Positions 29,510 to 32,500 of a stretch of DNA of 64,000 nucleotides are shown here, piece after piece. Positions within the stretch are counted from its first letter, which is position 1, and each line of letters begins with the position of its first letter. The notes under the pieces are model-generated. The model had not been told where the DNA came from, did no database searches, and saw only the letters and a program-made list of their open reading frames with translations. Where the stretch lies: the NCBI RefSeq assembly GCF_033153115.1, contig NW_026889796.1, forward strand, positions 6,758,001 through 6,822,000, in the 5' to 3' direction. Source of the DNA: Saccostrea echinata. Taxonomy: Eukaryota. A program made the translations under genes and the position numbers.

Positions 29510-32500
29510 ATGGACAAAATGAGAAATTTAGAAGTAGTCTCATTTGTAATTTTATTCTTTTTCCCATTTGTGACACATTGTGATGAACAGGAGTGCTACA
29601 ATGGCACATGCAAGTCGGAATACGTTCCCCATGGACCTTTGGTTCACTGTAAATACTTGTGAGTACAGCATTTGATTCACATTCTGTTTTGTCAGAAGAA
29701 CTTGACTATATAGAAATGAGCTAGGTTAAGGGTTTACATATAAACTAACCACAATTTAAATTTTGGTAGACCAATGGAATTTCTTAACTGTTCAGAGCCT
29801 CTTGACTTGAATGGGAATGATACAAGACAGAAAGAGCTTGGACATGGATGTTTAAAGGTGAGTTATTAAAAATAATCAGGAAATTCACTATTTCTTCTTT
29901 TACATTGTAGTGATTAACAAGATACTGTAAATGTACATATGTATTCACTCAAAATGTAGCACAATCTTCCTTATCAATTGATTAGTGTATTCTAATCATA
30001 AATTAGTGCACTTGCAGCAAGTCTTCTCTGTTTAAATCAGGGATGGCAATTTGTAAATGGTTAATCGGCTTAAAAAAAAAACAAACAAACAACTTATTAA
30101 AGTACACATTCAGCAGTACTTTGGGACATTGCATTTGGTTCTTTAAATATTCATAGCAGATACTACATAATGTATTTGTGATTGACACATTAATACTCTT
30201 TTAGTATGGAGGACAGAGACATGAGGACATTGAGTACACAGGTGTGGTGTGTTCAGTTCTACAGGGAATCGCTTGTTACGGAAACAGAACTTTCATAAAG
30301 GAGGGGTTTCCTTGCATCAAGTAAGTATTAAATCTGGTTGTGAAGCTTATGAAGTGTGTCTCTTTACATTTTGCACATGCAGATCACTTGTTTATGTGAA
30401 AAGAAAAAACTAGTAAACTTTTAAGTCATTGGGTAAAGATAACTTTAAAAGAGCTAGGTTAGCTTTGTGGTGACCAGACGGGTTAGATTGCTAGTGGCCA
30501 GATTGCTCAGTTGGTAGAGCACCTGACTGGAGATTCAGGGAGCCCAGGGTTCAAATTCTGGTCCATCACATTTCATACATGTGATTCTTCCGGTGGGAGA
30601 CAAAAACTCCCGATATTTCACCCCCCTTCCGCCCCTCCCGATTAATTTTTAAATCTTCCGTGTTTTAAAATTCTTCAAATTAAATATTATTTGCAATATT
30701 TTTTAATCATATTTCATATAATTGCTCAGAATGAAAAGAAAGTGAGATAACAACGCCAGTGCAATAAATTTACACAGCGGTAGGCTTCGTAGGAATCAAC
30801 ATGAGGTCGTATAATTATGTTGTAAAAATTAGTGATATATCAACTTGATAAAAGACCATTGATGTTTATTACTGAATGCAAAACATTGTAATTAGTTGCT
30901 AAAATATCCAGTTGCCATCTTCCAATGCTGCTTTGGTCATTAAAAGATACAGTTATAATGTAGGTCACACTCTAGTTAAAAATAGATCACACTACAGGGT
31001 GTTGCTAAAATATACCCAACTCTAATTTGTTTATTTTTTTAGAGGGTACTTTTTGTCATCTGTACATATTCTATTTAAAAAAAACAAATTACTGACATAG
31101 AATTTGTTACATAAAACTTTAGAATGTTTTACTTCACTTACTAGTTGATATATCAATACTAAATCAAAAATAAAATTTTATCCAATGTTTTAATGATGCT
31201 GTTAACTCTTAATTAATTTACTAGGAAATGAGTTGATTTTATTTTGAATACTCAATTTCACTTCATTTGAATAAAAACTTTATCATATTTTTCTTAAAAC
31301 TAGACAACAACTTTATAAAATAAAATTTGTAAAGTAATAAACTGGGAGAAGGTATTTTTTCCTGAATTTTGGGGGTTGGATGGTCTTTTGCGATTTGAAA
31401 AAATGTCGATAAAAAATCTCCAGCTTTGAGACCCAAACTCCAGCTGAAAAATTTCAAATCTCCAGTTGTGATTTTTCAGTTCTGTCACATGTATGACATT
31501 TTTCTCCTTTCCTGTTACATTTGGTGCCAGGCCATGCTCTGGATGTGACAGGTGAAAGACCTGCCAGGGAAGAGCCTGGGTTGGTGTCTTTGGGGTGAAG
31601 ACCCTTAAGGATAGAGGAGTGTGGCGGTCAGACGGGTTCGATCACTGTTGGTCAGATAGCTAAGTTGGTAGAGCACCTGACTGGAGATTCAAGGGGCCCA
31701 GGTTCGAATCATGGTCTGGTCCGTCACATTTTTCTCTCTCCTGTTACAGCTTTATTCACAAATACCTAATTTAGTATACCTGCAAGTTCTAATCAATTGA
31801 CATCCTAAATGTTGATCCACTGTCAAACATCAATCGATATAAAGACCGAGACTTTGTACAAATAAAAAAGGTTCTTATAAGATTTCATTTAGTGTAGTAG
31901 GACTTGACATGTTAAACATTCATGATTTACATTCAAGCAACCAATTACCTCTATTTAAAAAATATAGTAATTGCATGTAATACTAGTACATTGTATTTTC
32001 TTGACTTTTCAAGTACCGGTATATGTAGTTGAGCAGTTAAAAGCATTTGCAGCAAACTTCCTGAATTCACCTACAGCATATATTGTAAAGTTTGTAATAT
32101 CAAACTTATATTTCACTTTTGATATTTTATACTTTCTGTCAGTGACATATTGCTACCCTTTATGCTATGTCCGATTAAAGCGATCTAAAGGCCTGTGAGT
32201 GGAATATAGATTGCTACTACTTCTCTTTTTCCTTAAGTAAAATAAGTTACAATGCAGATGATTGTCTTTTGCAATAAATTGTTAAAAGTTTTCATTTTGC
32301 TGATATTATATACAGTAACACCATTACCTTTGTTTGACACAGATACAATGGACACTATTTTGTGACCACCCTTATCTATTCAGTGCTACTGGGATTTCTG
32401 GGTATGGACAGATTCTGTCTGGGACACACAGGCACAGCAGTGGGTAAATTACTGACTCTGGGAGGAGTGGGAATCTGGTGGATTGTGGACATTGTCCTCC

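Follow-up and report, generated by a model that had tools for sequence, protein, structure and literature searches.

A probable old Helenus-type TRIM copy, interrupted by a later TIR transposon, and its candidate Gypsy helper

Anatomy of the window copy

We analysed a 64,000-nucleotide stretch of contig NW_026889796.1 (the window, whose numbering is used below unless a locus or repeat is named) and find that positions 30462–31752 very probably hold a terminal-repeat retrotransposon in miniature (TRIM) of the Helenus type, an old copy that is inactive and into which an element with terminal inverted repeats (TIRs) was later inserted. This estimate is a joint one, which takes in the course of events proposed for the copy. 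The original element would have been about 355 bp long, and would have consisted of a long terminal repeat (LTR) of 126–129 bp, the dinucleotide TT, a primer-binding site (PBS) for tRNA-His, a non-coding core of about 100 bp with two hairpins, a polypurine tract (PPT) and a second LTR. Its reverse transcription would have been primed by tRNA-His, and its integration would have been carried out in trans by the reverse transcriptase and integrase of a Ty3/Gypsy element, leaving the 4-bp target-site duplication (TSD) GCTT around the original insertion. The name Helenus comes from Kojima 2024 (PMC10886601), where it was given to TRIMs of 311–1263 bp with tRNA-derived sequence in their LTRs. From pteriomorph bivalves that study described 51 Helenus families, every one of them with a 4-bp TSD, and it suggested Gypsy elements as their helpers. 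The parts of the window copy are listed below.

30462–30465, no strand: 5' TSD copy GCTT, read directly; the same 4 nt stand at 31749–31752
30466–30573, plus strand: first 108 bp of the 5' LTR, starting TGTGGTG, from repeat search and alignment; 86.7% identical to one young LTR
30496–30564, plus strand: tRNA-like unit of the 5' LTR, with the A box intact and the T arm and B box damaged by a 5-nt loss; 28.7 bits against Rfam RF00005
30574–31495, no strand: nested 922-bp TIR element, non-coding, a later insertion within the 5' LTR
31496–31501, no strand: second TSD copy (ACATTT) of the TIR element; the first copy, 30568–30573, lies inside the LTR
31502–31519, plus strand: last 18 bp of the 5' LTR, ending CCTGTTACA, from repeat search and alignment
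31520–31619, plus strand: internal core, 100 bp, non-coding, with two hairpin-forming stretches; 84–89% identical to other copies
31522–31528, plus strand: decayed PBS TGGTGCC, 7 nt left, complementary to the tRNA-His-GTG 3' end plus CCA
31607–31619, plus strand: PPT AAGGATAGAGGAG (TTTAAGGAGGGAGGAA in young copies), read directly
31620–31748, plus strand: 3' LTR, 129 bp, TGTGGCGG..CCTGTTACA; 89% identical to one young LTR
31650–31722, plus strand: tRNA-like unit in the 3' LTR, both boxes (A and B) and an 8-nt anticodon loop present; 39.8 bits against Rfam RF00005, and also found by ARAGORN
31729–31733, plus strand: run of five T (T5), 7 nt past the tRNA-like unit; putative RNA polymerase III (Pol III) terminator and R/U5 boundary
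31749–31752, no strand: 3' TSD copy GCTT, read directly

Removal of 30574–31501 rejoins a first LTR (LTR1) of 126 bp, to be set against 129 bp for the second (LTR2). Both run TGT..ACA, and they are 83% identical in a global alignment, with values from the repeat search of 84% for an 83-nt LTR core and 80% for the LTR tails. The internal core starts with TT-TGGTGCC and ends with AAGGATAGAGGAG, and no open frame was found in the window copy. The preliminary description of this DNA had already proposed much of this arrangement: paired repeats of 126 and 129 bp with TGT..ACA ends, a 100-bp spacer carrying a PBS-like TT-TGGTGCC after the first and a PPT before the second, GCTT duplicated around the whole, and an original length of about 355 bp after excision of 30574–31501. 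Direct reading and alignment recover each of these, the duplication at 30462–30465 and 31749–31752 included, and the excision leaves LTR1 colinear with LTR2. The tRNA-like unit with an abnormal anticodon arm that it had placed in each LTR is likewise borne out, by Rfam scores of 39.8 and 28.7 bits and by the 8-nt loop that ARAGORN reports.

The window copy is about 84–89% identical to young copies of its family. CpG transitions make up 7 of the 16 substitutions in LTR1 and 5 of the 13 in LTR2, while surviving CpGs number 1 of 10 and 5 of 10, respectively; CpG decay appears to have eroded both LTRs and the PBS.

What interrupts the copy is a distinct transposon that landed in the 5' LTR of the TRIM at a later time. 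It is 922 bp long with a GC content of 29% and is bounded by 11-bp TIRs (CATACATGTGA and TCACATGTATG), between which no open frame longer than 70 amino acids was found. At least 40 near-full copies, 92–97% identical, are present in the genome, and a 6-bp TSD flanks all 11 of the other copies inspected (L032–L042), or 12 of 12 with the window copy counted. In the window this duplication is ACATTT, derived from the T-run region of the LTR. A TSD of 6 bp is unusual.

The same build recurs across the genome

The core and LTR2 were used together as a query against the window's own assembly (923 Mb), which returned 1464 first-look candidates, of which 40 were scored. Nearly all of these 40 have the LTR-core-LTR build. 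From 30 loci fetched we extracted 23 distinct full elements, with LTRs of 127–134 bp, cores of 101–105 bp and totals of 359–369 bp; the young copies among them are tighter still, at 129–130 bp per LTR, 102–103 bp for the core and 361–363 bp overall, with a TSD of 4 bp. Perfect 4-bp TSDs flank 12 of the 17 simple copies and a further 2 match at three of four positions, compared to none of the 17 when the next four bases outward are taken instead. Within each of two elements (L021 and L027) the LTRs are 100% identical, which indicates that the family was recently active.

Motif counts across the genome, allowing up to two mismatches for 23-mers from the LTR and the core and up to one for the LTR/PBS junction, gave 852, 395 and 273 sites, respectively, and all reversed-pattern controls gave 0. 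The LTR-to-core ratio of 2.2:1 fits a population made up mostly of two-LTR elements, with some solo LTRs and arrays in addition. Because the LTR-core-LTR build recurs genome-wide with the controls at zero, chance is ruled out as an explanation for the anatomy of the window copy.

These copies also decide between a single element and two independent tRNA-derived short interspersed nuclear elements (SINEs) lying 100 bp apart in the same orientation by coincidence. Each repeat, taken alone, does resemble the head of a tRNA-derived SINE. Against this, one 4-bp TSD surrounds the pair and none surrounds either repeat, the 100-bp spacer is conserved and always lies between two repeats in the 23 other copies, the repeats run TGT..ACA without an A-rich or simple-repeat tail, the PBS and PPT sit exactly at the junctions, and the TSD length is fixed at 4 bp. 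SINE-like tails and TSDs of variable length, which the preliminary description had named as the signs of two SINE insertions, were not found in the 23 other copies, whose TSDs are fixed at 4 bp (17 simple copies). The coincidence of two SINEs was rejected on these grounds, and we regard it as barely conceivable.

A second alternative, that the window copy is a fragment of a satellite-like tandem array of LTR and core units and not a transposed element, draws on the arrays that do exist in this genome in the form LTR-core-LTR-core-LTR, and on the tandem arrays reported for LTR-11_DR (PMC10886601) and biv-TRIM (PMC6934838). However, the window copy is a lone two-LTR unit, as are 17 others; their sites are unrelated, and each has its own TSD. 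Moreover, the two arrays found here, of three LTRs and two cores each, are themselves bounded by matching 4-bp TSDs (CCTA and CAAA), as expected for arrays that arose from an inserted element. A satellite origin is thus very improbable, and the window copy is best read as a transposed, two-LTR TRIM.

This TRIM is one of a known kind. The copies combine short LTRs and a non-coding core with a tRNA unit in each LTR, a PBS, a PPT and a 4-bp TSD, all of which characterise Helenus. The closest published family, Helenus-1_SaGl from Saccostrea glomerata, has an LTR of 129 bp, a core of 103 bp and a total of 361 bp with a 4-bp TSD (PMC10886601, DataS1/Table S1), and belongs with Helenus-2C_CGi and Gypsy-39_CGi to a group with a tRNA-His PBS (PMC10886601). 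Compared by eye with the young copies, its consensus differs by 3 substitutions and 1 indel (an extra T) in the 130-nt LTR and by 4 substitutions in the 103-nt core, and identity over both LTR and core, again by eye, is above the 80% asked by a family rule of the 80-80-80 style. On these comparisons the window copy belongs to the published Helenus-1_SaGl / Helenus-2C_CGi oyster lineage, a known family and not a new class. The preliminary description had tentatively placed the copy in a Helenus-type group, had called for a survey of the genome for paired LTRs and TSDs, and had suggested that it might be a new member. The survey supplied the 23 further full copies with perfect TSDs in 12 of 17, which together with Kojima 2024 support the placement; the suggestion of novelty does not stand, with young copies about 96–97% identical (by eye) to Helenus-1_SaGl.

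The core carries a further regularity. In the hairpin just before the PPT, a T-A pair is swapped for a C-G pair between two subfamilies (11 and 11 copies, with 4 showing a wobble or mismatch), and in the published Crassostrea consensus the stems of the same hairpin differ yet still pair (by eye). The two core hairpins may have a role in packaging or reverse transcription; with few independent swap events, this is a lead only.

Two pairs of loci, L006/L007 (C76/C14) and L017/L018 (C30/C27), hold the same TRIM copy on different contigs with identical 12-bp flanks on both sides, which suggests either haplotypes left uncollapsed in the assembly or segments duplicated recently.

The tRNA-like unit in each LTR

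In young copies the tRNA-like unit occupies LTR nt 31–103. Its score on the Rfam tRNA model is 55–62.6 bits (eight young LTRs), and its fold is a complete cloverleaf whose anticodon loop has 8 nt. Of 41 LTRs from the other copies, 35 carry the A box TAGCTCAGTTGG and 29 the B box GGTTCGAATC. The window units have decayed from this state: the unit at 30496–30564 falls just below the Rfam gathering score of 29 bits, and the one at 31650–31722 is called by ARAGORN as a tRNA with a 4-base anticodon, corresponding to its 8-nt loop.

The high scores and cloverleaf fold of the young units, which reach 62.6 bits, are what would be expected if the family were a set of dispersed functional tRNA genes, with one working tRNA per LTR. 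The anticodon loop has 8 nt, however, and for three of four young copies ARAGORN returns the four-base anticodon GGAG and no isotype. The decayed scores in the window (28.7 and 39.8 bits) point the same way, as does the finding of Kojima 2024 (PMC10886601) that for most Helenus units no functional tRNA is predicted. It is therefore very unlikely that the unit is a working tRNA or that the family consists of tRNA genes.

When the Crassostrea and Saccostrea consensus sequences are compared by eye, the LTR flanks differ but the unit hardly varies except in the anticodon loop, a pattern consistent with selection acting either on the promoter (its A and B boxes) or on the fold.

The stretch of about 30 nt upstream of the unit resembles the unit's own T arm at 16 of 18 nt, a match equalled by 6 of 500 shuffles; on account of this resemblance, the LTR reads in the order B-box-like, A box, B box. 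The upstream stretch may be a relic of a partial duplication. Its position is as follows.

LTR nt 13–30 of young copies (for example L027:1401–1418), at 31632–31649 in the window: T-arm-like stretch, resemblance 16/18 nt

Predicted priming by tRNA-His

The tRNA-His-GTG genes of this genome, as annotated by ARAGORN, end in ..CCTGGTCACGGCA, such that the complement of the mature 3' end with CCA added begins TGGTGCCGTGACCAGGAT. The PBS of the family is complementary to this tRNA over 10 nt in most copies, over 14 nt in one copy, and over a full 18 nt in a subfamily (L069 and L078) in which the 13 nt after TGGTGCCGTG have given way to precisely the 8 nt that come next in the tRNA complement. If the family is active and primed by tRNA-His, its footprints would be copies of just this kind, with the PBS rewritten to the full 18 nt. 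Plus-strand strong-stop DNA copies 18 nt of the primer, and we infer that its fixation in the progeny would give an 18-nt PBS of this kind.

Longer extensions are found in other families. In a second Helenus-type family, with the LTR end CCTGTTACA and the spacer GATT, one copy (L071/L076, G000:C10 ~1365042–1365062) has a PBS that is perfectly complementary to tRNA-His plus CCA over 27 nt and then passes into a fragment of an LTR; the copy looks like an aberrant product of reverse transcription that went too far into the primer. Another LTR family (L077) has 21 nt of tRNA-His complement. Taken together, the over-extended PBS copies look like footprints of real tRNA-His priming.

In the 18-nt subfamily (L069, G000:C9:48314444; L078, C18:2644279), the 13 nt that were replaced include the 5' half of the first core hairpin. 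At three further loci (L048, L049 and L050; G000:C2:24.26–24.37 Mb) a 17-nt tRNA-His PBS string occurs in one repeated context that does not look like an LTR element, and these appear to be a local repeat.

A candidate Ty3/Gypsy helper

A 17-nt tRNA-His PBS has 191 matches in the genome, compared to 1 for the control. Among 30 such loci, the commonest class other than the TRIM is an LTR element of about 8.7–9.0 kb, of which three copies were inspected (L073, at G000:C9:1498500–1508499, L074 and L075), all on the minus strand. Their LTRs are 1.19–1.25 kb long and 99.4–99.8% identical, and gag (443 aa) and pol (1295–1296 aa) are open in all three. The order of Pfam domains, namely protease, reverse transcriptase, RNase H and integrase, is that of Ty3/Gypsy. 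Their LTRs begin TGTRGTG and end CCGGTTACA, their PPT reads TTTTTAAGGGGGGAGGAA, and two clean TSDs were found, both of 4 bp.

Several signals are common to this Gypsy family and the TRIM. The PPTs agree at 15 of 16 nt, the first five and last six bases of the LTRs are the same (TGTRG..GTTACA), and both PBS type and TSD length are shared. In the published consensus sequences, compared by eye, a TTTAAGGRGGGAGGAA tract goes with the His-PBS families whereas Lys-PBS families end otherwise, and for this reason the likeness of the PPTs appears to go beyond generic purine richness. Only about 18 LTR/PBS junctions of the Gypsy family were found in the genome, from which the TRIM would outnumber it roughly twenty-fold or more. 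On this evidence, the young, low-copy Ty3/Gypsy family is the best candidate for the mobiliser of the TRIM.

A different LTR element with a tRNA-His PBS (L056, G000:C4:9922700) has the LTR end CTTACTACA, which resembles the published LTR ends of Helenus-2B_CGi and Helenus-4_CVi, with an open stretch of 277 aa lying downstream. This element may serve another Helenus lineage as helper.

Transcription and the weight of the evidence

We propose, in line with the preliminary description and with Kojima 2024 (PMC10886601), that the LTR would be transcribed by Pol III. The polymerase would bind at boxes A and B and initiate at about LTR nt 31, and the genomic RNA would end at the T5 run (LTR nt 110–114) of the 3' LTR. 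A run of four or more T is found in 7 of the 11 bivalve consensus LTRs compared from Kojima 2024 (PMC10886601). The LTR would then be divided into a U3 of about 30 nt, an R made up of the tRNA-like unit (about 80 nt) and a U5 of about 16 nt. For a transcript of full length, Pol III would have to read through the same T5 in the 5' LTR, a point not discussed in the text of Kojima 2024 (PMC10886601). The whole of this proposal is possible, and we hold it only tentatively: the LTR would be divided wholly by Pol III signals, the RNA would arise by reading through the stop in the 5' LTR, tRNA-His would prime reverse transcription, a single low-copy Gypsy family would act as helper, and the family may still be active.

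The element could also be a true Helenus TRIM whose template comes from Pol II or from host read-through transcripts, in which case the unit might serve, for instance, as a packaging or stability signal or to make a small RNA of its own, or might be what remains of the SINE from which the LTR arose. In the other copies T5, a standard Pol III stop, lies 7 nt past the unit, at LTR nt 110–114, in 39 of 41 LTRs, and because this stop adjoins the unit a Pol III start in the 5' LTR should mostly give an RNA of about 85 nt without the PBS. In Kojima 2024 (PMC10886601), too, the Pol III promoter function of Helenus is stated to be unvalidated. On the other hand, the unit is, by eye, almost constant apart from the anticodon loop although its flanks differ, which fits selection on the A and B boxes; only about 30 nt are available upstream of the unit in a 130-bp LTR for a Pol II promoter; and Cassandra is transcribed from its 5S unit, with a short terminal duplication, as cited in Kojima 2024 (PMC10886601). 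We consider a Pol II or host read-through template unlikely, and retain transcription by Pol III as the working model for the family.

The absence of T4 runs from the core, which holds in 21 of 23 copies, was considered as support for Pol III and rejected: a T-poor stretch of 100 nt usually lacks T4 by chance.

That near-chance result lends our interpretation no support, and several observations weigh against or limit it. The T5 run stands between promoter and PBS in the 5' LTR, where it would apparently stop Pol III before the genomic RNA is made. Partner LTRs are no closer to one another than are the LTRs of different elements (median 0.946 versus 0.944), and the partner is the best match in only 1 of the 23 elements; a constant master copy would also give equal likeness, such that the LTR comparison lends no extra support. 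The identities to Helenus-1_SaGl (for young copies about 97% over the LTR and 96% over the core, and for the window copy about 85–89%) were judged by eye. Several other LTR families in the genome also have a tRNA-His PBS. Finally, the link to the Gypsy family consists of short signals only, that is, a 16-nt PPT, 6–9 nt of LTR ends and the PBS type. The preliminary description had looked to an autonomous Gypsy partner, and to a tRNA-His-type 3' end for pairing with TGGTGCC. The latter holds for the family at large, whose PBS matches the genome's own tRNA-His-GTG over 10–18 nt. The former stands in part: a candidate sharing PBS, PPT, termini and TSD length has been found and Gypsy helpers have been suggested in the literature, but the sharing is limited to the short signals just named.

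Significance

The Helenus class was already published in oysters in 2024, and the window copy is itself ordinary and changes nothing. What the present analysis adds to published work is modest, and comprises a model of R bounded by T5, the footprints in the PBS, and a candidate helper, named here, whose frames are open. There are nevertheless practical consequences. With about 850 well-kept LTRs in the genome, and units scoring 55–62.6 bits in eight young LTRs, tRNA predictors and SINE annotators will miscall hundreds of sites. The genome, which holds copies with identical LTRs, seems well suited to a test of whether Pol III transcribes the element and reads through the terminator. The helper may also become nameable, given a low-copy Gypsy family that shares PBS type, PPT, LTR ends and TSD length with the TRIM.

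Comparison with known systems

Helenus-1_SaGl resembles the young copies in its LTR ends (TGTGGCGG..CCCGTTACA), its PBS string TTTGGTGCCGTGCCATGC, its PPT TTTAAGGAGGGAGGAA and its 8-nt anticodon loop. It differs from the majority sequence here in three fixed LTR substitutions and in one extra T within the T-run. Because the three LTR differences are the majority state in this genome, they probably reflect an oyster host other than S. glomerata, or a sister subfamily.

Helenus-2C_CGi of Crassostrea gigas (128/101/357 bp) likewise has a 4-bp TSD, a tRNA-His PBS and a near-identical tRNA-like unit, and the Gypsy candidate described here has exactly its PPT, TTTAAGGGGGGAGGAA. It has been counted at 1124 LTRs and 402 internal parts in its host (Kojima 2024, PMC10886601), a ratio similar to the 852:395 found here. 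By contrast, its U3 and U5 parts and core are more diverged, and its consensus has no T4 run after the unit.

More distant parallels are Cassandra of plants and Ajax of nemerteans, which also carry a small Pol III gene in each LTR of a non-coding TRIM ('TRIMp3', a term for which no relevant literature was found beyond Kojima 2024), have a PBS and a PPT, and are mobilised in trans (PMC10886601). They differ from the present family in using 5S rRNA instead of a tRNA and in their 5-bp TSDs, and they share no sequence relation with it. The bivalve biv-TRIM (Satovic et al. 2019, PMC6934838) is similar in occurring as solo repeats and tandem arrays. Its repeats of 202–218 bp and core of 77–80 bp are of other sizes, and in the parts of that paper considered here it has no clear PBS and no tRNA-like unit is reported, which marks it as a different family.

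Finally, tRNA-derived SINEs (SINE2) share with the element a tRNA-like head with A and B boxes and a reliance on the reverse transcriptase of a helper. They are, however, single units that end in an A-rich tail or one derived from a long interspersed nuclear element (LINE), have variable TSDs and use target-primed reverse transcription, whereas the element described here has paired LTRs, a PBS, a PPT and TSDs fixed at 4 bp.

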